Shown: positions 48,376-64,000 of the stretch, piece by piece
Layout: every line of letters begins with the position of its first letter
Position numbering within the stretch: the stretch's first letter is position 1
Assembly: GCA_020891255.1 (NCBI GenBank)
Contig: BQFW01000011.1
Location: 2,036,618 to 2,100,617 of the forward strand
Direction: 5' to 3'
Source of the DNA: Entomortierella parvispora E1425
Taxonomy: Eukaryota; Fungi; Mortierellomycota
Length of the DNA: 64,000 nucleotides
Made by a program: the position numbers and the translations under genes
The notes under the pieces: model-generated
Seen by the model: only the letters and a program-made list of their open reading frames with translations
Databases searched by the model: none
Told to the model about the DNA's origin: nothing

Positions 48376-48591
48376 TAATATCAGACATTTCCTTTTTAGG
48401 ACAAAACAGAAACTGTATCTTACGGTCGGTCAGAATGGCGCAAACGATGCATAGACGCTCTAGGACGTCGTTAAACTGTTCAAATACGCGAGTTTAGGGC
48501 GAATAAACCCTAAATTAAGGTTTAGGGTTTTTTAGGTTTTAATTCTTTAATGGGGTATGCCAGTCGGCTCAATGCTTGATGGTTTACGGGG

Positions 48592-49428
48592 CTATCTGGG
48601 GCCACGCCTGGAGGCGGGGCGGGAGTGGTATGGTTTGGGGCGGGAGTGGGCACGCTTGGGCTTGGGATGGGCCTGTGGCCTGAGGCGGAAGAGGTGATGA
48701 GAGATCTGATCACTCAAATCCATGAACTGGTCCTCCAGGTCATCCAAGCCTTGCATCGCCGAATGTTCGCCTACTTGGGCTTGCTCGTGTATCCTGAGGC
48801 GCGCTTCGACATACTCGAAGCGCCTTTGGAGAGTCTGAACGAAGGTCTCCAGGGCCTGGGTATATTGCCTCGGATGCATAGGGGTTGGGGCGTCTTGTGG
48901 TTGGTGAACGTCAACCACGGGCGCCTGGTCGACAGTGCCAGTCGCTGCCTGTGACAGGGGGGGGAGTCCACCCCCCATTGTCTCCAGCGGGCTCTGTGGC
49001 ACCATCTCCAACAGGTCTTGTTCTTGCTCGAGCGCCGGCAATGGTTGGGTAGCCTCATCGTCCGCATCAGCCACGTACGTGGTGTCAGCAACGTGATGGC
49101 CTTGCCCCGTCTCGTCCTCCTGTCCCGAGGGAGGGTCCGTTATCTCGGCGTCGTCATCTTGGTGGTTGTCCTCCTTGAGTCCTCGCTCCCCTGCCCCTCG
49201 TCATCGGACCCGCCGAAGACGGTGTGGGTGGGGGGGGCCCGCCTCTGGCGGGGGCGGAGGTTCATGGGTCTAGGACTCATCATGGAGCCCTTAAGGTGGC
49301 TGTGGGCCTGTGTTAAGGGAACCAGGCCATTCTCGCCAACAAAGTCGTCGATGGTGACCTTCTTGGGGGTTTGGACAACTGTCTTGAAGCTCACTGGGGG
49401 AGTGCTGGGGGGCAGCGTGGCGGTTCAT
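48592..49428 (-). CDS. Hypothetical acidic/disordered protein with coiled coil and basic tail, apparently frameshifted
   Basis: CCACC-ATG at 49428 after a CT-rich leader. Adding one base in each of three short homopolymer runs joins MNRHAAPPALPPVSFKTVVQTPKK...SDDEGQGSEDSKEDNHQDDD...LETFVQTLQRRFEYVEARL...RPASRRGPR*. Confidence 0.45.
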
Positions 49429-50199
49429 GGTGGGAGTGCTGTTGTTGGTGGGGGTGGGTGGGTGGAATGGAGGAATGGAGAGAATGGAGAGAAGAGAAAG
49501 AGGTCCAAATTGGGTTGGGCATCTCTTTCATCTTTTCCATCTTGCTCCATCTTACTCCATCTCAATCCACCCTGACGATGGCGTGATCGATGGAACCCGA
49601 TCGGACCAATCGCATGCATCCACGACCCTGACAAGATGCATGAGGGCATTCTCCAACTCTTGGTCTCTTGGTCACACCCAAATGACCCCCCTGAGTGGGG
49701 GTCAGGGGGAAAGTTGGGGTCTCTGGGGGGAGACTGGGTGGACGGACTTTAGGGTGAAGAAACCCTACAATGGGGAAACCCTGCAATGGGGAGACCCTAC
49801 GCTGGGGACACCCCAGATTGGGGTGAGCCATGCCCAGGGCACCCAAGTTAGGGTGCAAGGTGGGGAAAGTAGGGTGTCCTTGTCTTGTCTTGTCTGCCTG
49901 CATGGGAGGAAAGCCCCGCCCATGTCACCCCAAGTAGGGGTGAGCGGGGAATAAGGAGTCCTTGCTTGCGCGCTCGCATGGGCGAGCTGGGATGCGCAAG
50001 CTGGCAGAGTCTTGAACGGCAACGGTGAGCAGAAAGGCGCAAGAAGAAGCTGCAAGTGCAAGCTAATGGGATAGCTGATGGCGAGTGGCCTCCCGAGCCC
50101 CATTGCCACGGCTCACGAGTGGGCTATGGATAGGGCTGCTAAAACCTCCTCTGGCCCCCAGTCCCCGGGGGAAGTGGGAGGAAGCCGGCCAGAGGGGGG

Positions 50200-50990
50200 G
50201 CAAAACAGACCAACTTGGAGCAGTCAGTCTGCAATGGGCTTGAAGGATGGACCGCAGGGAGCGTCCATCGGTGGTATCTGGGGCAGCCGCGGCAGAGGGC
50301 AGCAGCAGCAGAGTCAGCCCCAAATCTCTATTTCTCACAGGTGAGGAAGATGAGCAAGTGGGGAGAGAAGAGAAGAGAACCCCCTCCTGGACTCCATTCC
50401 CTCAGAAGGGAGTGGGGTGGCGAGTCCGGCCAGGGGGGAAGATCCACGTCGAGATCAACAACTTGACCGAAGGGAATCAGCATGCAGCGACATGCGACGG
50501 GCTTGAGTGGATGGCGCGCAGGAAGCGTCCATCGGTGATATCTGGGGCAACAGCAATAGAGGCTGCTGCAGCAGAATCAGCTCCCAGTCCCAACTCCCAT
50601 CCCTCACACAAAAGGGATGGGCAAGTGGGGAGAAAACCCCCTGGCCCCCAGTCCCTCGGGGGGGAGTGGGCAGGAGCCGGCCAGAGGGGGAGGATCCGCG
50701 CCGAGATCAACAACTTGGCTGAAGGGAATCAGCATGCAGCGACATGCGACGGGCTTGAGTGGATGGCGCGCAGGAAGCGTCCATCGGTGACATCTGGGGC
50801 AATAGCAATAGATGCTGCTGCTGCAGAATCAGCCCCCAATCCCAACTCCCATCCCTCACACAAAAGGGATGGGCAAGTGGGAGAAACCCCCCTGGCCCCC
50901 AGTCCCTCGGGGGGAGTGGGTGGGGGCCGGCCAGGGGGGAAGATCCGCGCCGAGATCAACAACTTGGCCACAGGGAATCGACATGCAGTG
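50200..50990. repeat. Three tandem copies of a ~252-262-bp G-rich unit
   Basis: GGGCTTGA..GGATGG..CGCAGG.AGCGTCCATCGGTG recurs at ~50237, ~50499 and ~50751. Confidence 0.9.
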
Positions 50991-51407
50991 ACATGATGGT
51001 CATAATTGAATGGAGCGCCAACCAGTGACAACTAGAGCAAATAGAGGCAAAGACCAAGATCGACCTCCTAGCTCAGTCTCCAAAGGGAGAGAAGGCCCAA
51101 CCAAAAGACCACTGAAGCGAGAAGCCCGGCTGGCTGTGGTCTATGTGAACAAGAAAACAAAAAGGACATCAGCATGGATTCTTTTTCCAAGAAGAGAGCA
51201 ACACCAAGCGCTTGAGAAGCAACACCTACTGCAGAAGTGGACAGAACAACACGCTGGAGTGAAGCTTTTTTTTTGTTTCCGCCAAAAAAAAAAAAAAGAT
51301 CAAGCCCGCAGGACAGAAGTGAATAGCAACTATGCAGGGAAGCGAAAAGTCCGTCCATTGTCAGATCCAGTCAGGAGGGTTTGGCCAAGAATAATGAGCC
51401 AAGAGGA

Positions 51408-51745
51408 GGACCAGGGCTAGGAAGAGCCAGGACCAAGAAGAGGGCCAGGACTAGGAAGAGGGCCAGGACCAAGAAGAGGGCCAGGACCAGGAAGAGGGCC
51501 AGGACCAGGAAGAGGGCCAGGACCAGGAAGAGGGCCAGGACCAAGAAGAGGGCCAGGACTAGGAAGAGGGCCAGGACCAGGAAGAGGGCCAGGACTAGGA
51601 AGAGGGCCAGGACCAGGAAGAGGGCCAGGACCAGGAAGAGGGCCAGGACCAGGAAGAGGGCCAGGACCAGGAAGAGGGCCAGGACCAGGAAGAGGGCCAG
51701 GACCAGGAAGAGGGCCAGGACCAGGAAGAGGGCCAGGACCAAGAA
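51408..51745. repeat. 18-bp minisatellite (GGACCAGGAAGAGGGCCA) x ~18
   Basis: Read directly; a second, shorter 17/18-bp array of the same unit is at ~53050-53238. Confidence 0.95.
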
Positions 51746-52149
51746 GAAAACCCCCGACCTCGACCTGATCCGAAACTTCAGTCGACTCAGAACCAAGGTC
51801 AAGGTCACTGGCTAGGTTGGCAACAGCAAGAAGAGACCACGTTAGAATGCATTTCGTTTTTTTTTCCCTTTCCGCTGTCCGTGACTTTTCGCAGCACTTT
51901 TCTTTCTTTTTGCCTTTGCGGCTCTGAGAAATCACTCTTTCCCCGTTCTTCAAAAGATACTCTTCTCAAACTTACCGTACGAACGGATGCAACATCCAGG
52001 ACAGCAAGGACAGCAGGGTGCAACCAGTCTATGTCTTCTGTGCGAATGTGGACCCATGCAACAAAAAGTACTAGACTCGAGGCATGGCTCCGGCGTTTCA
52101 GAAATCAGAAACTTCATGATGGCATGTAATGTCACATGCAACAGGCATT

Positions 52150-52410
52150 GAGTCGGCAGGCAACGACAGGCAACGACAGGCAGCAACTTGACTGAGTGGG
52201 CCAAGCATGGAGTTGACAGGCAACGACAGGCAGCAACTTGACTGAGTGGGCCAAGCATGGAGTTGACAGGCAACGACAGGCAGCAACTTGACTGAATTGG
52301 CCAGGCATGGAGTCGACAGGCAACGACAGGCAGCAACTTGACTGAATGGGCCAGGCATGGAGTCGACAGGCAGCAACTTGACTGAATGGGCCAGGCATGG
52401 AGTCGACAGG
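52150..52410. repeat. 50/40-bp tandem repeat x5
   Basis: CAGCAACTTGACTGA anchors at 52181, 52231, 52281, 52331, 52371 (40-bp core plus a 10-bp CAACGACAGG subunit). Diverged copies at ~54090-54250 and ~55550. Confidence 0.92.
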
Positions 52411-55400
52411 CAAGACAGGCAACGGTTCGACCGAAAGACTCCAGGAAGTAGCCACAGGGCAAAAGCCAACAGAGTCGGTCCTGGTGCCCTAGTCCCAGCT
52501 CACATAGTCTCAGCCTCCATCCCCCACATGTGGGGGAGATGGGCAAGTGCCCTCTGGCTAAGGAGATTGGTGACAGGCGATGGGCTTGAATGATGGAGCA
52601 CAGAGAGCGCCCCTAGCGACAACTGGACCAGACAGACCCAAAGACCCAAGGCCCACAATGGACAATCTGGGGAGACCCACCAGAGGAGATCTGCTCGACT
52701 GAAGGACCAAAGGAAGCAAGGGGCCCAACCAAAATACCACTGAAGCAAGCGCGGGCAGGCGCTAGGTCTATATGGACAAAAACCAAGAGGACATCAGCAT
52801 GGATTCTTTTTCCAAGAAGGAACATCAAGCGCTTGAGGAGCAACACCTACTGCAGGAGCGGACAGAACGACACGCCTGGGGTGAAGCTTTTTTTTTTTTT
52901 GGCTCCGCAACCAAAAAAAAAAATCAGGGCCGCAGCAGGTCGGAGGCAGACACAGCCTGACAGAACGGCATGGCAGAAGCGGACAGAAAAGTCCTTCGAT
53001 TGCTAGATCCGGCCATAGAGGGTTTGGCCAGAATAATGAGCCAAGAGGAGGACCAGGACCAGGAAGAGGGCCAGGACCAGGAAGAGGCCAGGACCAGGAA
53101 GAGGCCAGGACCAGGAAGAGGCCAGGACCAGGAAGAGGCCAGGACCAGGAAGAGGCCAGGACCAGGAAGAGGACAGGAAGAGGACCAGGACCAGGAAGAG
53201 GGCCAGGACCAGGAAGAGGACCAGGACCAGGAAGAGGACGCTGTTGACTTCCTAACTGCGTAGACAATAAAACGAAGAGAACGTCAGAATGAGCGTTTCT
53301 TTTTTCTCTTCCTCCTCTCTCTCTCTCTCTCTCCTCTCTCTTTCTCTCTCTCTCCTCTCTCTCTCTCTCTTCTTTCCTTGGGAGGGATTTCAGACGCGTG
53401 AAGAGTCGCCTTGCTTACCAGAGGAGCGGGCAGTGCAGAAAGTCGTTTCATTTTGCAAAGCGTCAGACGGACCACACAACCAGAAAAAACCCCCCGACCT
53501 CGACCTGATTCGAAACTTCAGTCGAGTCAGAACCTAGGTCAAGGTCACTGGAGAAGGAAACGGAAACCCTTGTCCGCAAGCCAAAAGAGACATGCTGGCC
53601 TGAACATGCTTGGCTAGGTTGGCAACAGCAAGAAGAGACCACGTTAGAATGCATTTCTTTTTTTTCCCTTTCCGCTGTCCGTGGCTTGTCGCAATTTTCT
53701 TTCATTTTGCCTTTGCGGCTCTGAGAAATCACTCTTTCCCCGTTCTTCAAAAGATACTCTTCTCAAACTTACCGTACGAACGGATGCAACATCCAGGACA
53801 GCAAGGACAGCAGGGTGCAACCAGTCTATGTCTTCTGTGCGAATGTGGACCCATGCAACAAAAAGTACTAGACTCGAGGCATGGCTCCGGCGTTTTAGAA
53901 AACCAGAAACTTGAATCGAGACCGTGCAGAAGCAGGACAACGCAGGTTTTCATGCAAAACCTCAAGACCCACAGGTGCAGGTTATGGGCTCATCCTTCTG
54001 ACATCCGGTCCTCGGAAGGAGCAGGAGCGGAGGGTCAAAGGAGGGCAATCCAGCTTGGCTGGATGGACAGCATGATGATGACATGTAATGTCACATGCAG
54101 CAACTTGACTGAATAGACCAGGCAGGAGTCGACAAGCAACGCCTGGCAACAACTTGACTAAGCAGACCAGCATGGAGTTGACAGGCAGCGACAGGCAACA
54201 ATGTGACTGAGTGGGCCAACATGTGGTTGACAGGTAACGACAGGCATCAGTTCGACCGAAAGACTCCAGGAAGCGGCCACAGGCGACAACGGTAGCAATT
54301 CTCAACGGAGATCCAGGATTCTTGAGTACCGATTGGGTGATGGATTCACCCTTCATCGCCTTGGTATCGATGAGGGTGATAAACTTGACTGAGAAATCAT
54401 CACGGAGGCAATATTCAACGGCTCGACCCCAAGGAATACTGGAACGAACTTATCGACGACGACCCAGCAACGGCCCTCTCCTCTTGCTATTTTGCGTGGA
54501 ATCAGACCACACCTAGTCAAGTGTGCGAGTTTGTCTAGGACTCATGCAAAAGCCACTAGGCGCCGTCTCTAAAGCAGGAATCGTAGTAGGCGAAAAAGAA
54601 TCAGCCCACTTGGATTGACGGCAAGGAGCTCAAGGATCGAGGAGAATGGATACCGTTGACGCTCTTGACTATATCGACAATAAAATCAGCTAAAGTCGTT
54701 AGAACGATTGCTTTTTTTTTTTCTATCCCTCGAAAGGGATATCACAGTATCACAGGCGTGGCAGACACTTACCAAAGGAGCGAATAAAACGGCGGTGTGA
54801 ACAAAGATAAGTAGCCTGCCTGATTATATCGACAACATGGGAAGGGTTAGAACGATTGTCCCTCCATTTGTCTTTTTGCACGAGAGGCTTTCAAACGCGT
54901 GAGGAACAACACTTACCATAGAAGCGGATTGAACAAGTGGGATTTGCAACAAAGCAGGCCAGGAACTCTTTTTTTCTAAGCGGGCAACGAACCACACAAT
55001 CAAGGACCCCTCCTCCGAACTCCTGTCGACTAGACCAGTGCTGTGAGGTCTGAGGCTGAGGATACCCTGTCTTCCTGAACATGCTTGGCTGCGGACAAAA
55101 AAAAAAAAAAAAAAAAACGAAAAAAGGCACATCACGTGCGTCAACCATCTCGTACTCGATTCTCGTCCTCGTTGGAGCTGCCCATCCGTCTTTGTCTCTT
55201 TTCAACGACACGCCCCAAAAAACTTACCATACGAACGGATGCAACTTCCAGGACTGCAGGAACGGTAGGAACGGCAGGATACAGCCAGTTTGTTTCTTTT
55301 TTGCGAATATGGTTCACGAAACAGACCCAAGATGTAGCTCCCAGCGCTTCAGAAAACCAGAAACTTGAGTCGAGACCGCGGAGCAGCAGGAACAATGCCA

Positions 55401-57187
55401 GTCTTTCATGCCAAAAACTCAAGACCCATATGGGCGGGCTTTTGGGTTCAGCCTTTGAACACCCAGTCCTCGGAGGTAGTAGGAGAGGTTCTTCAAAGGT
55501 GGGCAGATCAACCTCATCGAAAGAGCGGCTTGGAGATGACATGTAATGACACATGCAACAGCTTGATTGAAAGAGCCAGCATGGAGTCGACAGGCAACGA
55601 TAGGCATTTCGACTGAAGGACTCCAGGAAGCAGCCATAGACGACAACGAGGGCAGACCTTAACCCAGATCCAGGACTCACGCATGCGAATCGTGAATGTG
55701 GTTTCATCCCCTTGGTGCCCCGACCCGACAGGGGCAGGAGGGATTTCTGGCCAGCATAAAGTTGGTATTCAACGATTCAGCGGAAGACATGGACCGGACC
55801 AGACATGGGACAACAGAACTGTGACGGCTGCCCCTCCTTTCTTTTTTTTGAGCGGAGACGGACCTCGCCATCAAAAAGAACCAGCGCCCGATCCAGAGTT
55901 CCGGTCAGTCAAAAACTTAGGGCAATGATCGCAAGGAACATGGAACTGGCTAGAGCCGAGGCGAGCAGACGCTGTCAACATGCCCGACTACATGGACGAT
56001 GAAACAAGAGGGGGCGTTAGAATAAGTTTTCTTTATCTCTCTTCCATACAAGCCAACTTCACTCACCGCAGGGAATAGACATGGAAGCAAGACAGAAAGG
56101 ATGTGTCCAAACCATGTAACAAAGCTCCTGTGGTCCATGCCATGATGAAATTACGACGTCTACTCCCAGGAAACCGTAAAGTTGAGTCAAGACCGCAAGT
56201 TGCCGCTACAAGAGGAGTAAGCAGGTATGAGTGGGCTGAAAAGACCAATTGGCCAGGATGGAAGTCCGGAGAGAAGACCAGAAAAGGGCGCCTTTGACAT
56301 GGTAGGAGCAATCACAATGACAATGTGGCAACGGTCTGCAAGGAAGAGGCGGAAGAATGGAAACATCTCACCTGAATGGAGGACCGAAGACCAGACGCTG
56401 GGTCAGACTACGTAGGATATAAAATCAACTAAAGCCGTCAGTTGAAATACTTTCTCCGTTTATCTTCCTCAGTAGGGAACATCGAATGTATGAATTGTAG
56501 GCTGCACTTACTGAAACTAGAGCAGATATAACAACCGGGCAGGAACAGCCGCCATCTGCAGCTTGGAAGCTGAATGTTTTTTTTTTTGGAGCAAAAAAAA
56601 AAAAAAAAAAAAAAAAAAGAGGCCCAGTCTCGACCCCAGAACCCCTGTCAGTTCAGATCATGTCAAGGCCGCAAGGCGCCGCCACGGAAGCAGGGAGCAG
56701 AGTAGGCGAAAAGGAGACAGCCGCTTGAATTGACAGCAAGGATTCAAAGGACCGAGGAGATATATACCATTGACATTCTTAACTCTATGGACAAAGCAGT
56801 TGAAATGGTTAGAACGATTGCTCTTTCTTTCTATCTCTCTTCCATTGAAAGGGGTATTGTAGGCGTGAAGAGCAGATGCTTACCAAGGGAGCGAATACGA
56901 GAAGTGTGAGGACACGGGCAAAAAGGAGCAGATGTCATCAACTGGATGGACTAATTGCTGGACAATATGGACAATAAAGACCATGGAGGTCGTTAGAATG
57001 AGATATCTTCTTTCGTAATGATCAACACTTACTAGGAGAGAAGACATGGGGCAGCAACGATCTGAGCAGGGTGGCAGCAATTGTAGTCAATTTTTTTATT
57101 TTATTTTTTTTCTGGCGCGAGGGAGCACGAACAAAAAAAAAAAAAAAAAAAAAAAAAGACTGACTGACTGACAGACAACATCCAAGA

Positions 57188-60100
57188 CTATACATCGTAG
57201 TTTTCCCGAGGACGCATCCAGAATTCCAACCAGCCAAATGCCTCGGCCAAGGAGGCAAGGTGCCTCTCCTTGAGGAGGAAGTCGACGAAGTTGGGACGAC
57301 ACTTGTTTGGTGCAAGCGGGGGCAGAGCCAAGAAGGTGGCAACAACTTTCGGAGGGGCACGATCAAGGAGCTTTTCTTGCCAGCCGCAATCGACAACATG
57401 GGTTTGATGAAAAATGTTGTTGCATTCCGAACAGCGCGCTCCACAAGCGAATTTGTTCAGGTGCCAAGCAATTGCGTTCTTGCGTAGGCGGAGTGACTTG
57501 AAGTAGATGGCGGTAACAGGCCCTATACCTCTCGTGCGCATCTGAGGCTCGAAATACTTGCAAAGCCGCAGCGTCCGGAAGCACTCGTCAAGGAACCTCT
57601 TCCGCAGCCAGACCTTCAATGAATCGACTTTTTCTTCTCTTCTAAGTCTTGCCAGATAATTTTGATACAACAGGCGGTCCGGGTGCTTGTGGCACTTTGG
57701 AAGAATCCGGTCCTTATTTCGGCCAACATTGCCGAAGAGGACATCACGGAGGGTTCTTGCTGGGTTGTTCCCATCCATTCCAATAAAGTGGTCCGTAAGG
57801 AGGCAGGCCAAGTCGGAGAATCGCACGTAGATAGTTGGCAAGGCAAGAAATGAGTGAGTAACCTTTGTAGGGTCCTTGAACTCCAAAATCCATTTCAGGG
57901 CCGCGTCTTGGACTGTCGCTATAGCCTTCAAGTGCTCTGTCCTAGACTTGCTGTCATTCTGGATCCAGTGGTACATGATGCCTGCACCATATTCCATTCT
58001 AGAGCGGACAAACGCGCGATACAAAGCTAGCCGTAGACCTGCAGACCACTTGGAATTACCCCTGGCTTCGCAGAACTTCAGAGTCTTTGATGCTTTTAAA
58101 GCCATGGATTTCAAGTGTTCAGCCCAGTCGATCCCTCTGGATTTGTATGGGAATCCAAGGTAGTTGTAGCATTCAACCCGAGGGATTGGGCCAATACCGC
58201 GAAGGACCAAGTCACGATCACCATGGGTCAGACCAACCACCCCGCATTTAGCGAGATTGATCGTCATACCGTTCTCGTGGCACCAGTCGACCAAGTCATT
58301 GGAAGTAACTTGCAAGTGGTGCAGTGCATGGGATCCAGCTGTTATATCGTCGGCGTACAACAGCGCTCGCGGTATTTTCTTCGGGTCCGGAGTATCCTTG
58401 TTAAGCTTGTGAGCCAGGTCGTCGATAAAGATGTCAAACAATAGAGGAGACAAGATGGAGCCTTGGAGCAGGCCTCGGCTCAGGGGAATAGACTCTGTCT
58501 GCCTCCCATTGACGATAACCTTAGTAGATGTGCCGACAAAGAGGGCGTCTACGAGCGACAAAATCTGAGCGGATGCTCCTCGGGTTTTCATCTTTGAAAG
58601 TAGCAGAGGCACTGGGACTGTATCATATGCTTGGGCAAAATCGTAAAAGACACGATACTTTTGTCCGCGGATAGCACAGTCGTCAGCAACCAATGCATGA
58701 GTCAAAGTTGAAAATCCGTTACGGAAGCCAGCTTGAGTGTGATGAAGCTTGGAGGCATCAGACTCCAAAAGATGTCCCAAAAGAACTTTTCGAAGGTCCG
58801 CCGAATCATCAATGTAAGGGAAATTGGCCGGAATTTGTCAATGGTCGTAGCACCCTCTGTCTTCGGAATAGGATTGATTACGGAGACATTCCATGATGAT
58901 GGCGTGACACCGAGCAAACAGCAAATCCTGAAAAGGCCAGCAATGTGTTCTGGAAGCTCGGTGCCTTGAAGTGCTCGTAGGAGTTGGACATGGATCCCAT
59001 CCTCTCCACCAGAGGCGTTGGTCGGGTATTTCTTCCAGATTGCTTGCATGTTATCCTTCGTAAACATATCGTCCAAGCCAGGATCAGGCTCAAAGGAGAT
59101 GCCACGGTAAGGGGATCGAGCCGCAGGTAGGAATCGTGGATCGGGCTGAGTGAAAACAGACCTGTAGTGCGAGACAACATCTGCCACTGGAGAGATGGTA
59201 GGGTCCCGAGATTTCAGAGCCACCACCTGGCTGCGACACGCTCGTTTGAAGATACGGATGGCGTCATTCATCTTCGGGACCGAAGACAAAGAATCAGAGA
59301 GCTTGTCTGGAGTAGTACGAATGACGCTGGGGACATAAGAGCCGCATGCTTCTTCAGCCGCTGTCAAGATAGCTGAAGAAAGACAATCGTCAAGATGATC
59401 CACCACTGCTTGTCTGTCTTGGAGGAAACTCCATCCAAAGAACGCGCGTCAGAGAGTCGCCGTACGCGCGATACAGTGTCCATGATAAACTTGTCGAATT
59501 GGTTGGCCAGTTCCATGTAGTAACCACAGCAGAGAGAACGAACTGCTTTTAGTTCCAAGTACTTCAGACTGATACGGTAACACTCGTCGGTAGTGCCAGT
59601 ATCATGTATATCACGAGGCGTGAACTTGCAAGACATGAGACTGTGGTCCGTATCTGTCCATACTGAGGGGTCAACCCGTTCATACCTCCAAGAGAAGTCT
59701 GGGTGAAAGCGAGCCAATACATGATGGTTCTTGGCGTAGACAGAAGAGGGAAAACTCGGTTGTAATGGTAATGATGGACCAGCTCCTGAACTATGGTGAC
59801 ACGTTCACCGATAGGGGGGGAAGGTTTGGTTCTCCTAGCTTGGTGTTGATGTCTCCGAGAAGAATATCTGGACGAGATCTCGAAGAAAGGTGGGCGACGG
59901 GATCGAACAAAGCTGAACGGAAGCTGGGGTTCTTGAGAGAAGGAGGAAGATATAAGGCGCGGATGTTGGTGCCAAAGATGGACACGTCAATTGAGTGCCG
60001 AGTGACTGAAAAGGTGCAGTGTGATCGCTTGAGTTGGTGGGAGACAACACAGATGATACCACCATAAAGCCGGCCATTAACTGGTCGACTTCCAGGTATG

Positions 60101-60282
60101 GGCGTAGAACAAAGGAAGAGAGGATGGCGACTGTAATAGTCAGGGCAGATATACCATGTCTCTGATAAGAAGATGATATCGAAGGGGGATGGGCCAGAAA
60201 CGAAAGAAACGATTCTGTCAAATGAACCTGCCTGAAGACCGCGGCAGTTCAAGTAACCAGTACGGAGGACCTGATTATTCAT
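57188..60282 (-). CDS. LINE ORF2: AP endonuclease, reverse transcriptase, CCHC zinc knuckle (4 apparent frameshifts)
   Basis: EN: YLNCRGL, IFLSETW, YGGII, ALYLPPS, LLGDINTKLG, TDHSL. RT: IPK...FRPISL, QAGFR, FYDFAQAYDTV, GLLQGSILSPLLF, LLYADDI, KCGV, YLGF. C-terminal CSECNNIFHQTHVVDC. Confidence 0.93.
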
Positions 60283-62697
60283 GAGAGGAAGCGGGGCGTG
60301 TGGGTTCCTCATTAGCGCTTAGAGCGTCAGCACTGGCACCAGCTGTGTCTTCGGCAGCGGGATGCGTATGAGTGTCAACTAGCTCAGAATCAGAGGCGGT
60401 TGCAGTAGCAGCCAGGGGGGGATCAATATCCATTGCAGCAGAGGCGGCTTCAGAAGCAGCACCAGTCAGAGGGATATCAGTTTCCACCAGCCCGGAAGAA
60501 GCAGAGGCCGTCGCGGCAACAGTGCCAGTGTCCATCGGTCCAGAGAGATCAGGGAGATCTGTGGCAGATGTGGGAGCTGTGGGATCTGCTGCAGCAAGCA
60601 TGCTCAGGAAATCATCTCGCACGAAATCGCGGTTGGTCGTTGAAGCCGTTGTTTCAAGGCGGCGAATGTACGCCCCTCTCAGAAGCTCTGCAGTCTCTTC
60701 AGTGACATTGGGATCTTGAGGAACGGCTGGGTCATAGTTGGGCAAGTGTCTGAAAGTGAAGCTTTTCATAGACTCAATGAACTTGGCTCGGTAGGCAGCA
60801 TCGACCAAAAATTCGCACATAGACTTCCCAACAAATGAGATGTTGTAAATCAGTGAGGTACAAATTCTCAAACCACGCAACTTTGCCTTGAAAACCTTGA
60901 GAGGCCCGGACTGAACACCAGAAAAATATACTCGGACAGGAGCAATCGTTGGTCTTGCGGCCTCGGCAGCAGTTTTGCGTGCTCTGAAAGGTCTTGGAGG
61001 CTTCATGGACTTGACAATGTCCATCTGAGCCTTACTAGGACCTTGGCGAGCAGCACCAGCGTTAACTGTTGCCTTGGTTCTTGCTTTGGCAGGCGAATTG
61101 GACTGCGAGGCAACAGCAGAAACTGCTGCCGGTGATCTGGCTGCAGAATGGGACCGAGGAGAGGCAGGCTGAGCTTGGCGCGGCCGAACAGAGTCGATAC
61201 GAACTCGAACAGGCTTTGCTAGACCGGCCTGGACTCGAGTTGCGGGAATGACAGGTGGCCGGGAGTCTGCCTCCGCTGTCAGTGGTGCTTGGTTGGACTC
61301 GCGTTGCAGACGGAAGAGCTCTGTCACTTCTGCTTGGATGACGGCTTGAAGTTGGGTTGCAAGTTGGACTTCGAGTCGAGCTTCCAATTGCGCCAATTGG
61401 GCTGTAAATAGCTCGACAGCCTGCTCTCGGAATAAAGGTTGACCCTCAGTACGCTGTGGCTGCTCCTTTTGACAGGTAGTTTCCTCCATGCAGCCCTCCG
61501 CGTGGCGTCGTATTCCCAATGCAGCAGATGATAGTCTGGGAGGGGCATGCTGACGCGAGAGCTCTTGATCCGCCCCAGGCGGAAAACTCTGCGAATCTGG
61601 CTCAGTAGATTCAGGAGTCTCCGCGCGACGACGTTTCCCCAATGCAACAGATGATGGCCTGGGAGAGGAACTGTGTGTGTGCGAGAGCTCTTGACCCGCC
61701 CTGAGAGGAGAACTTTGGAAGGCTGGCAGAGTGGATCCAGATGCCAAGGCTACAGTCTGTATCGGAGTTCCCCTGACATCGGTGTCCACTGTGAGGGGTG
61801 GAGGCTCAAAGTGGGGGATGAGGAGCCCATCTGGCTTGCTTGTGGATCAATTTGTGACTGATCATCAACGATGAAGCTTAACGATGACTGACTGTTGGCA
61901 ACTGACTGAGAGGGCTGCAGAGAGTCAGGCGACCAGTGCGGGTACTGGGAGTGCCGGTGCTGCTGTGTCAGGGGAGATCCAAGGCGAGAAATTTGGGTAC
62001 CCAAAGCAGGTTGCAGCGGGGTCGAGGAAATCACCATTGTGCCAGAATCGTAATCGTCAAGCTCGTGCACTGATTCGGTGTCTGACAGCAGGCTATGACC
62101 GATCAAGTGCCATGGGGTACCATTATGATCCGCAGAGGCCCCATCTTGAGTGGCAGGGTGTTCTGCATGGTCCACAGAGGCCCCATCTTCAGTGGCAGGA
62201 TGTACCGCATGGTCCGCAGAGGCTCCATCTTGAGTGGCAGGGTGTTCCGCATGGTCCATAGAGGCCCCATCTTGAGGGGCAGGGAGTTCCATATTGTCAA
62301 CGGAGCATACAGCGTGGGTAGTAGGGTGTACAACATTAATAAGGACCCCTGTCGTCGCCTCCCTCCTATACGCTTCCGCATTTCTACGGACTACTCGTTC
62401 AGCTTTTGCGGGATCACGACTAACGACACGCAGAGTCTCCAGCATTTTTTGGACTTTAAAGGTACTTTTACAACCGCCACAACGGAAGCGGCGGATGTTT
62501 GAGCCCTGCGAGCACACTTGATCCTTGTAGAAGGACCGTGGGAAACGCTTATTGCAATCGGCATTCTCACAGCGTGTAGGCCAGAGTCTGCCAAATCTCT
62601 GGACGAGTTCCTCAGCCTCTAGTCGATTCACGTTTTCGTTCCAAGGTAAAGGTGGGGCCATGGCGAGAGCTTGCTCTATATTGTTGAAAAGGATCAT
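60275..62697 (-). CDS. LINE ORF1, probably a single ~800-aa protein split by one missing G
   Basis: N-terminal CENADC...RCGGC zinc-ribbon-like region; central S/P/Q-rich region; RVYFSGVQSGPLKVFKAKL...IYNISFVGKSMCEFLV core. One extra G in the run at 61770-61773 fuses ORFs 62697-61750 and 61789-60275. Confidence 0.75.
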
Positions 62698-63448
62698 CTG
62701 TCAGTATTCAGGACTTTCGACCTTTTTGATATTTTGATTTTGTGCTGCATACCCGACAAGGAATACTGGACAGTTGGAAGGAATCTCGTGTTTTTTGGGG
62801 TTTGGGAAGGTTTTTTTGAAGCGGACAGTTACTCAAGAACAATTGCTCGGCATGAACCTGTGGATAAAAGTTTGGTTTAGGGAGGGTCCAGAAGCAAGTA
62901 GATAGATGAAGAAGCACCCTGTAGTTACATACCTCTGACGATCAATAGGTAGATTTCTTGGTCTTCAGAAGGGAGGCCTTTGAGGCAGACCGGTACTCTG
63001 CGAAGGAGGAACCAAGCACTAAAATCGAGGTCGAACTTGAAGATAAAGAAGTGTTTTTTAGTATTAGTTCCGAAGCTGGTAGATACATGTAGATAGAAGA
63101 ACAGATGGATACTCTTGGTAGACGTGCTTGGAGATCCAAAGAGAGGATCTGGTCTTCGAGAGGGTCTTTGAGGTAGATGGCACTTTTCTCAGGGAAAACC
63201 AACAGCAGGTCTGATAGAAAATATTGATGTTAGAGAGAATTCTGAGGCAGGCTGGTAGATGAACAGATATCTCACATCACGTACCTGACAAAATATGATT
63301 CAGAGCGGCCTTTGGGTCAGACTGGCACTCAGATCAAGGAAAATCAGGTGAAAGCTCGGGAAGAGATGATGGTGCTGGAGGTTTTAAGGTAGAGAGTTGA
63401 GTCAGAAACTGCAGAATGGGCGTGGGCGCGATCGAGGCGACCTGGATG

Positions 63449-63456
63449 TATTTATA
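63449..63456 (-). promoter_or_regulatory. TATA box (TATAAATA) upstream of the spliced leader of LINE ORF1
   Basis: Perfect TATAAATA on the minus strand, followed by a pyrimidine-rich ATG-free first exon. Confidence 0.6.
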
Positions 63457-63548
63457 CCGCAAACAAAGCTGGAACGAGACAGCAGCAGAGGGAGCTGGCG
63501 ATGAACTATCATTGGTTGATCTTGATTAACTTTAATCCATTCACCAGC

Positions 63549-63704
63549 CCATCAGTTGCCCCATGATCTACCTTGTCCATCTTCCGCCCATCAATTGCTC
63601 CATGATCTACCTTGTCCATCCACCGCACCATCAGTTGCTCCATAATCTACCTTGTCCATCCACCGCCCCATCAGTTGCTCCATGATCAATCTTATCCATC
63701 CACC
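63549..63704. repeat. ~40-bp tandem repeat x4
   Basis: CCATCAGTTGCTCCATGATCTACCTTGTCCATCCACCGC-like units start at 63549, 63588, 63628, 63668. Confidence 0.93.
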
Positions 63705-64000
63705 ACTGTCGGGCAGCTCTTGAATACAGGTAAATCAAAAGATTGGCCTCTGCAAATTGTCTATTCGCTTAGGATGGTAGGATGGTCGAGAACACACTAC
63801 TCTACTCAGTTGATGGAGGCTTCAATGACCCCCTGCTCACGCAATTAATACAGTAGACTATACAAGTCAACCCTCACGCCTTTTGTTCTGCCATGGGACG
63901 AATGTCCAAAGAATAAATCCCTTCCATCTTGCCTATGAAGTCATGACTAAGTGCCCTTGTTGTAACCCGTCGCGATCACCCCATCATTGAAACAAAGAGG

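Follow-up and report, generated by a model that had tools for sequence, protein, structure and literature searches.

The region from 62698 to 63456 on the minus strand of the window (the whole 64-kb stretch of DNA analysed) lies directly upstream of a LINE at a chromosome end of Entomortierella parvispora. Judged from sequence comparisons, this leader is best read as a species-specific variant of a monomeric LINE 5′ UTR, and it is possibly spliced. We consider the chances about even that it is the expanded monomeric 5′ UTR of a telomere-associated LINE, made up of stacked promoter or regulatory modules, which would not be obligatorily spliced.

The window is the terminal part of contig C11, with position 64000 as the contig end. 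The E. parvispora genome was assembled from Nanopore data with polishing by Pilon, and a stranded RNA-seq library is on record as DRA013164 (PMC8759367).

An earlier note had described the leader as a TATA promoter followed by several introns. The leader was inspected on the minus strand from 62400 to 64000, and what the note had observed, both motifs and coordinates, is real. The TATA motif TATAAATA is at 63456–63449, and ATGs are present at 63088 and 62697. The coordinates are exact for intron A (GTACGT...CTAAC...CAG, 63284–63211, 74 nt), intron B (GTATGT...CTAAAC...CAG, 62932–62858, 75 nt) and intron C (GTATGC...CTGACAG, 62752–62698, 55 nt). The interpretation that the note placed on the leader is partly supported, as described below.

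The LINE and its relatives

The element directly downstream of the leader is a non-LTR retrotransposon, as had been proposed, namely a LINE with an ORF1, an APE-like endonuclease and a reverse transcriptase (RT). ORF1 (60275–62661, minus strand) encodes about 796 residues, with a Cys-rich motif at the N-terminal end, a conserved domain at the C-terminal end and an internal 42-bp (14-residue) repeat. It has one frame change in the window, near 61770, and is open over 796 codons in the second copy on contig C15. The internal repeat, at 62125–62290 of the window, is made up of in-frame units of the HPATQDGASADHA type, and the ORF1 proteins of the relatives do not have it.

ORF2 (57188–60312, minus strand) encodes the endonuclease and the RT, and is spread over four frames in the window. 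Its RT domain matches the Pfam family RVT_1 with an E value of 4.5e-26 and is of LINE type; the nearest solved RT chains, using the relative L046 as query, are those of L1 ORF2p (E 1.9e-18). The endonuclease gives a weak match to the Pfam family Exo_endo_phos (E 7.7e-4), which is below the cut-off, and the catalytic N, E, GDxN and DH motifs of APE endonucleases are conserved in the alignment with the relatives. Penelope-like elements have a GIY-YIG endonuclease and a telomerase-like RT. The comparison with these elements made in the earlier note fails, and a Penelope-like identity was rejected, because the endonuclease has APE motifs, the RT is L1-like, and there is no GIY-YIG. Right after the ORF2 stop, at 57098–57160, the sequence (TCAG)3 is followed by about 28 T and then by A-rich sequence, AAAAAAAATAAAATAAAAAAA, a combination that may mark the original 3′ end of the LINE.

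The annotated gene model EMPS_07226 starts at ATG 62661, and this ATG aligns with the ORF1 starts of all the relatives (M..(P)W). On this alignment, the conserved ORF1 start is ATG 62661 and not ATG 62697. The statement that the AG of intron C stands directly before the ORF1 ATG therefore holds for the window copy only: the conserved start is at 62661, and three of the four copies have a 1-nt difference at 62670 (an extra C relative to the window), which puts ATG 62697 out of frame.

Relatives were found using a piece of the RT, the full ORF1 and a profile of ORF1; the N-terminal 315 residues of ORF1 gave none in a word search. Six relatives were examined: L044/L045 (one element in two metagenomes), L046, L047, L048, L049/L050 (one element in two runs) and L051. 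Two of them, L047 and L051, are from Gryganskiella cystojenkinii, and the others come from assemblies of metagenomes or of sequencing runs. On contigs that extend far enough, the order is invariably the 3′ end of an element, a short telomere-like run, 120–290 nt of sequence, a TATA-like box, CAGGTA(C)G within a few bases, 60–80 nt, and the ORF1 ATG. The 60–80-nt stretch ends in GAGGACCCCCGGGACCCCC in most relatives, and is a diverged C-rich stretch in L044. The conserved 3′ terminal motif ends in CTTAAAG or CTTAAC. The 3′ end is joined to telomere repeats at the E. parvispora ends and in L044, L045, L046, L048 and L049.

In the L046 array, the element upstream of the full-length copy (L046:3-860) has an ORF1 that is 52% identical to that of its neighbour, and has no ORF2. 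Its ORF1 is followed by about 100 nt, the 3′ terminal motif of the family, and telomere repeats. This ORF1-only partner recalls HeT-A beside TART. In L046 (824-861), L047 (1-20) and L048 (1096-1145), the 5′ region comes after variant repeats, CCCTTAAAAATCCCGAAAG or ...CCCAAAG. Because they are common to three different relatives, these repeats may belong to the 5′ end of the element rather than to telomerase-made DNA. Comparable variant repeats occur at the 5′ end of MoTeR.

Predicted core promoter module and monomers of the leader

The TATA box TATAAATA is separated by cat from CCAGGTCGCC (63445–63436), and together these form a predicted core promoter module at 63436–63456 on the minus strand. 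It is homologous to the TATA-like box and CAGGTACGC motif that are found 60–80 nt before the ORF1 ATG in the six relatives. The TATA box noted earlier thus belongs to the LINE, since a TATA-like box with the CAGGTA motif precedes ORF1 in all six. The difference is one of distance: the core module of E. parvispora is 795 nt before ATG 62661, compared to 60–80 nt in the relatives.

The extra sequence is roughly 700 nt long, and consists of three diverged tandem monomers of about 175 bp plus a fourth unit, all given here as read on the minus strand. Monomer 1 (63211–63345) contains the core GAGTGCCAGTCTGACCCAAAGGCC, an ATATTTT stretch, CAGGTACG (63287–63280) and intron-like part A (63284–63211, 74 nt). 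Monomer 2 (63036–63210) contains the core, followed by CAAGCACG in the window and by CAAGTACG in the other three copies; its intron-like part (63127–63036, 92 nt) has a branch-like CTAAT and ends in AAG, and ATG 63088 lies within this monomer. Monomer 3 (62858–63035) contains the core GAGTACCGGTCTGCCTCAAAGGCC, GAGGTATG (62935–62928) and intron-like part B (62932–62858, 75 nt). Unit 4 (62676–62857) does not align to monomers 1–3. It has a T-rich stretch and CGGGTATG (62755–62748), and an upstream ATG at 62853. Its intron-like part is either C (62752–62698, 55 nt) or C′ (62752–62676, 77 nt), within which the length of an A run varies among copies.

Pairs of monomers score well above shuffled sequences, with z values of 4–7.6 for the exon-like parts and 2–5 for the intron-like parts, and are 75–84% identical at aligned positions. 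Units 1–3 share an element-specific core, AGTGCCNGTCTGCCTCAAAGGCC. The motif CAGGTAYG is present in every unit, its copies being 158–195 bp apart. When the promoter, the four units and the six relatives are aligned, CAGGTA is nearly invariant, and in each case is located just 3′ of a T/A-rich box. This alignment identifies the splice donors of the earlier note as repeated copies of a promoter-proximal motif conserved in the family. The motifs that it had listed as three introns and a degenerate one are present, but A, the degenerate intron and B occupy homologous positions in three tandem monomers, and so are not independent events.

In the relatives, CAGGTACGC is located 31–52 nt from a conserved GAGGACCCCC block. 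A short intron between the two was considered and rejected: the CAGGTA motif is not an intron donor there, because 31–52 nt is too short and has no branch motif. A possible homology between CCTTTTCAAC, which precedes the ATG in E. parvispora, and the CCCTTTCAACC-ATG of the relatives was also dropped, as it conflicts with the protein alignment. A leader comparable to that of E. parvispora is absent from all six relatives, which have short leaders, and the intron positions are not common to them.

The monomer core motif has no occurrence elsewhere in the 38.9-Mb genome, and a search of the genome for a host donor gene found no other copy of either the leader or the core motif. We conclude that no host gene was captured. 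No snoRNA or other known RNA was found in the leader by comparison with Rfam.

We suggest that the ancestral layout was that of the relatives, with telomere repeats, 120–290 nt, a TATA-like box with CAGGTA(C)G, 60–80 nt and the ORF1 ATG, and that in E. parvispora about 700 nt would have been added between the core and the ATG by tandem duplication of a module of 158–195 bp. The 5′ UTR of mouse L1 is composed of A, Tf or Gf monomers of about 200 bp. By analogy, the monomer array of E. parvispora may work as a series of promoter or regulatory modules ahead of ORF1. The two systems are alike in having tandem units of about 160–200 bp between the 5′ end of the element and ORF1, in repeating a promoter-type sequence in each unit, and in that the array is lineage-specific. 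They differ in that E. parvispora has three to four diverged units, in the same number in all copies, and in that its motif also resembles a splice donor and its units end like introns; the promoter role is a prediction. Two observations count against the array being composed of promoter modules. The number of monomers is invariant, being identical in all four copies (which are DNA duplicates), and a convincing TATA-like stretch before CAGGTAYG is found in monomer 1 only (CAGGTACG). To our knowledge, monomeric LINE 5′ UTRs are known chiefly from mouse L1. If the monomers are promoter modules, this fungal, telomere-associated element would therefore have a monomeric LINE 5′ UTR of independent origin.

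The subtelomeric unit and its spread between chromosome ends

The LINE is carried in a unit of 15.2 kb, at 48541–63756 of the window, and telomere repeats, (CCCTAAAAAA)n, adjoin the 3′ end of the unit. From its 5′ end, the unit consists of a 300-nt stretch containing a 40-bp tandem repeat, then the TATA box and leader, ORF1 and ORF2, and a tail of 8.6 kb. The tandem repeat (63523–63705, minus strand, about 4.3 copies) is inside the unit, 70 nt upstream of the TATA box, and there is a CCAAT sequence between the two. Distal to the unit is a flank of 244 nt (63757–64000, minus strand), which is a copy of ordinary subtelomeric (X-like) sequence. The 5′ junction of the unit falls between 63757 and 63756 (...GAATAGACAA joined to TTTGCAGAGG...), which is exactly where two LINE-free paralogs on C15 cease to be homologous. 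A LINE-free paralog of the distal flank is located at C15:22675-24764.

The tail (48541–57187, minus strand) is rich in tandem repeats. It contains many arrays, with periods of 18, 50 and 252 bp, as well as internal duplications, and ends with ...CCCCATTAAAGAATTAAAA directly against the telomere repeats. Searches of the tail for genes or a decayed LINE gave no tblastx or blastn match, no Pfam family and no ORF that could be assigned to a family. It may represent a very long 3′ UTR or, alternatively, subtelomeric DNA of older origin. No repeats common to the 5′ region and the 3′ tail were found when a TART-like arrangement was looked for.

The telomere repeat has a 10-nt unit, CCCTAAAAAA, of the TTTTTTAGGG type. 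It forms arrays at seven contig starts (C2, C4, C8, C9, C12, C13 and C18; L025, L027, L031, L032, L035, L036 and L041 respectively), where it is joined directly to sequence matching window 48540 and below. The length of its A run wobbles in the Nanopore assembly, and the repeat is also found in other assemblies of relatives. There is no TTAGGG array in the assembly, and the only published use of this telomere motif that we found is for the plant Cestrum elegans. A remnant of an interstitial telomere tract, CCTAAAAAACCCTAAACC, is present at 48516–48537 (minus strand) of the window. The tract is variable at other ends, with about 6–9 repeats, and at the short ends the terminal telomere begins at the same point of the X sequence as this interstitial tract. 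One variant 3′ junction was found, on C16.

Copies were located by DNA and protein searches of the genome, and the contig starts were surveyed in full. Eight copies of the LINE could be placed, seven at contig ends and one internally on C15, each oriented with its 5′ end outward: at the end of C11, the start and end of C10, the start of C15 with a second copy 39 kb in, and the starts of C16, C3 and C1. Two further contig starts, C6 and C14, begin inside the tail of the unit. Homology to the window is 98–99.5% from the contig end (64000) to about 48540 at seven further contig starts or ends, and falls to 83–92% between ends inward of this point. Between the two C15 copies (about 16–39 kb; L009-L011, L007) there is X-like sequence together with about 20 kb of other DNA.

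All four copies that are complete at the 5′ end have an identical 5′ junction against X-like flank, and the proximal block is common to all the copies. Compared over 7.1 kb, the copies show 0–6 mismatches and 10–41 gaps, and their reading frames are broken at different places. The truncations seen among copies are contig ends. No dispersed copy with flanks of its own was found in the genome, all copies being within one shared subtelomeric block. The leader is present only four times in the genome, and is unspliced in all four of the 5′-complete copies.

The copies are therefore DNA duplicates between chromosome ends, because they share both flanks and are nearly identical. The earlier note started from the premise that the LINE is copied through RNA, and should thereby lose introns and an upstream TATA box. 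This premise is not upheld for these copies, in that the four 5′-complete ones share the distal flank and junction, and all share the proximal block. Nor did we find the progeny lacking the leader that the note envisaged: there is no leaderless or spliced copy, and none of the eight placed copies is dispersed. Spread of the unit as DNA does not require the loss of introns or of a TATA box, and their persistence would follow from multiplication of the 15.2-kb unit between ends, the likely routes being break-induced replication or gene conversion and not RNA. A TATA box and introns in a LINE are then no longer paradoxical, because the TATA box is conserved in the family and is inside the element, and the copies are DNA duplicates.

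The breaks in ORF2 are likely to be assembly (homopolymer) errors, in multi-copy DNA that is beyond short-read polishing. This is because the breaks differ from copy to copy, the differences are almost all indels, and the assembly is from Nanopore data.

The Y′ element of yeast is a large block found on a subset of ends, distal to the core X, which encodes a helicase. The unit described here resembles it in being distal to X, with interstitial telomere repeats between the two, and in being homogenised between ends, and differs in that the block encodes ORF1 and ORF2 of a LINE. LINEs associated with telomere repeats have been described as TRAS and SART in Bombyx, MoTeR in Magnaporthe, and HeT-A and TART in Drosophila (PMC10088271). 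As with these, the E. parvispora element is at chromosome ends in a fixed orientation, with its 3′ end against telomere repeats, and its relatives occur in head-to-tail arrays separated by telomere-like repeats, one of which includes the ORF2-less element mentioned above. It differs from them in belonging to a fungal lineage, the Mortierellaceae, with a 10-nt telomere unit, in the 15.2-kb unit with its 8.6-kb tail, and in having spread as a block of DNA, with no visible independent insertions. It also differs from MoTeR in that its enzyme is of APE type. A literature search gave no description of such a telomere-associated LINE in Mortierellaceae. More notable than the leader itself is this wider setting, in which telomere-repeat-associated LINEs form a family across Mortierellaceae and the genome has telomeres of the TTTTTTAGGG type.

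Possible splicing of the leader

The chief alternative to an array of promoter modules is that the leader really is spliced, with three or four short introns removed (A, the one in unit 2 where GTACGT is present, B, and C or C′). We regard this as a real but lesser probability. Transcription would start about 30–60 nt after the TATA box at 63456, and splicing would leave a leader of about 450–600 nt. With all four introns removed, using C′, there would be a single upstream ORF of six codons before ATG 62661. The exon–intron module would have been multiplied by tandem duplication, and the introns would survive through spread of the unit as DNA.

Introns of the window were calibrated by joining ORFs across GT..AG. 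The joins were mostly false, and about nine plausible introns were picked by eye; these are about 79–96 nt long, with CTAAC or CTGAC 15–35 nt before YAG. The intron-like parts of the leader are 74, 92, 75 and 77 nt long (the last being C′), with a branch-like CTRAY 17–27 nt before YAG (AAG in unit 2), so that the arrangement of GT, branch site and YAG and the size are those usual for the genome. A strict regular expression for introns missed B and C, and a looser pattern was therefore used to count triplets of donor, branch and acceptor. There are three triplets in the 779 nt of the leader, against 0–0.2 per kb elsewhere in the window, a density roughly 20-fold higher than in the gene-rich part. 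None of 5000 Markov simulations reached three triplets, and the probability of two or more was 0.004, although the data had been seen before the pattern was fixed.

The density of complete signal sets of the right size, and the failure of any simulation to reach three, argue for splicing. The retention of branch-like sites and of sizes of 74–92 nt is not predicted by the promoter-module idea, and unit 4 keeps all three signals even though it can no longer be aligned to units 1–3. The intron called degenerate in the earlier note has a GC donor in the window copy, but the other three copies have an intact GTACGT at 63127. Intron C has the motifs described at 62752–62698, but its branch A is only about 3 nt from the AG; the acceptor at 62676 gives an intron of 77 nt, with the branch at a canonical 25 nt upstream. 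This intron, C′, would remove ATG 62697, an ATG that most copies have out of frame. Of the six upstream ATGs, five are inside intron-like parts; the exception, 62853, begins the six-codon ORF in an exon-like part.

Against splicing, a single repeated motif is the source of all four donors, and in six relatives this motif is beside a TATA box, where an intron would not fit. The likeness to donors thus has another cause, and the events are not independent. The pattern was chosen post hoc, and tandem duplication multiplies any chance match. Some of the signals are weak: B has CTAAA rather than CTRAY, the acceptor in unit 2 is AAG, and the branch of C is 3 nt from its AG. In addition, no relative has a comparable leader, and no spliced or leaderless copy is present in the genome.

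A fuller version of this alternative is that the 5′ UTR became a true multi-intron leader by way of the duplicated module, the promoter motif doubling as a splice donor, and that the unit, spreading as DNA, behaves like a spliced host gene in a form of domestication at telomeres. We consider this rather unlikely. If the leader is spliced, it would show how tandem duplication can give rise to introns and multiply them once a retroelement has come to spread at the DNA level.

It is improbable that the whole unit is inert subtelomeric DNA, a dead retroelement kept by recombination between ends, in which the TATA box, monomers and splice-like signals have no function. ORF2 is broken in every assembled copy, there are no dispersed copies and no visible independent insertions, and the 8.6-kb repeat-rich tail has no recognisable gene, all of which would fit such a relic. 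However, the breaks differ among copies and are mostly indels in a Nanopore assembly, and are thus likely errors; one copy has an open ORF1 of 796 codons, the endonuclease retains its APE catalytic motifs, and the core promoter module is conserved with the relatives.

Introns might instead have been retained through RNA-mediated copying, as in Penelope-like elements, for instance if unspliced RNA were reverse-transcribed. This would account for the unspliced leader in all four 5′-complete copies, but is very improbable given that the copies are DNA duplicates with common flanks, that the element is an APE-type LINE and not a GIY-YIG Penelope-like element, and that the relatives lack the leader. 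Spliceosomal signals inside retroelements are known from Penelope-like elements, from splicing of L1 and from antisense introns of TART. The E. parvispora element resembles Penelope-like elements and spliced LINE transcripts in containing such signals, whose use here is putative, and differs from the former in not being of that class.

The window copy differs from the other three in two C-for-T changes, at 63126 and 63117, and in the 1-nt deletion at 62670. One of the C-for-T changes destroys the GT of the donor-like motif of unit 2, and the deletion brings ATG 62697 into frame. These differences may be real variants or assembly errors.
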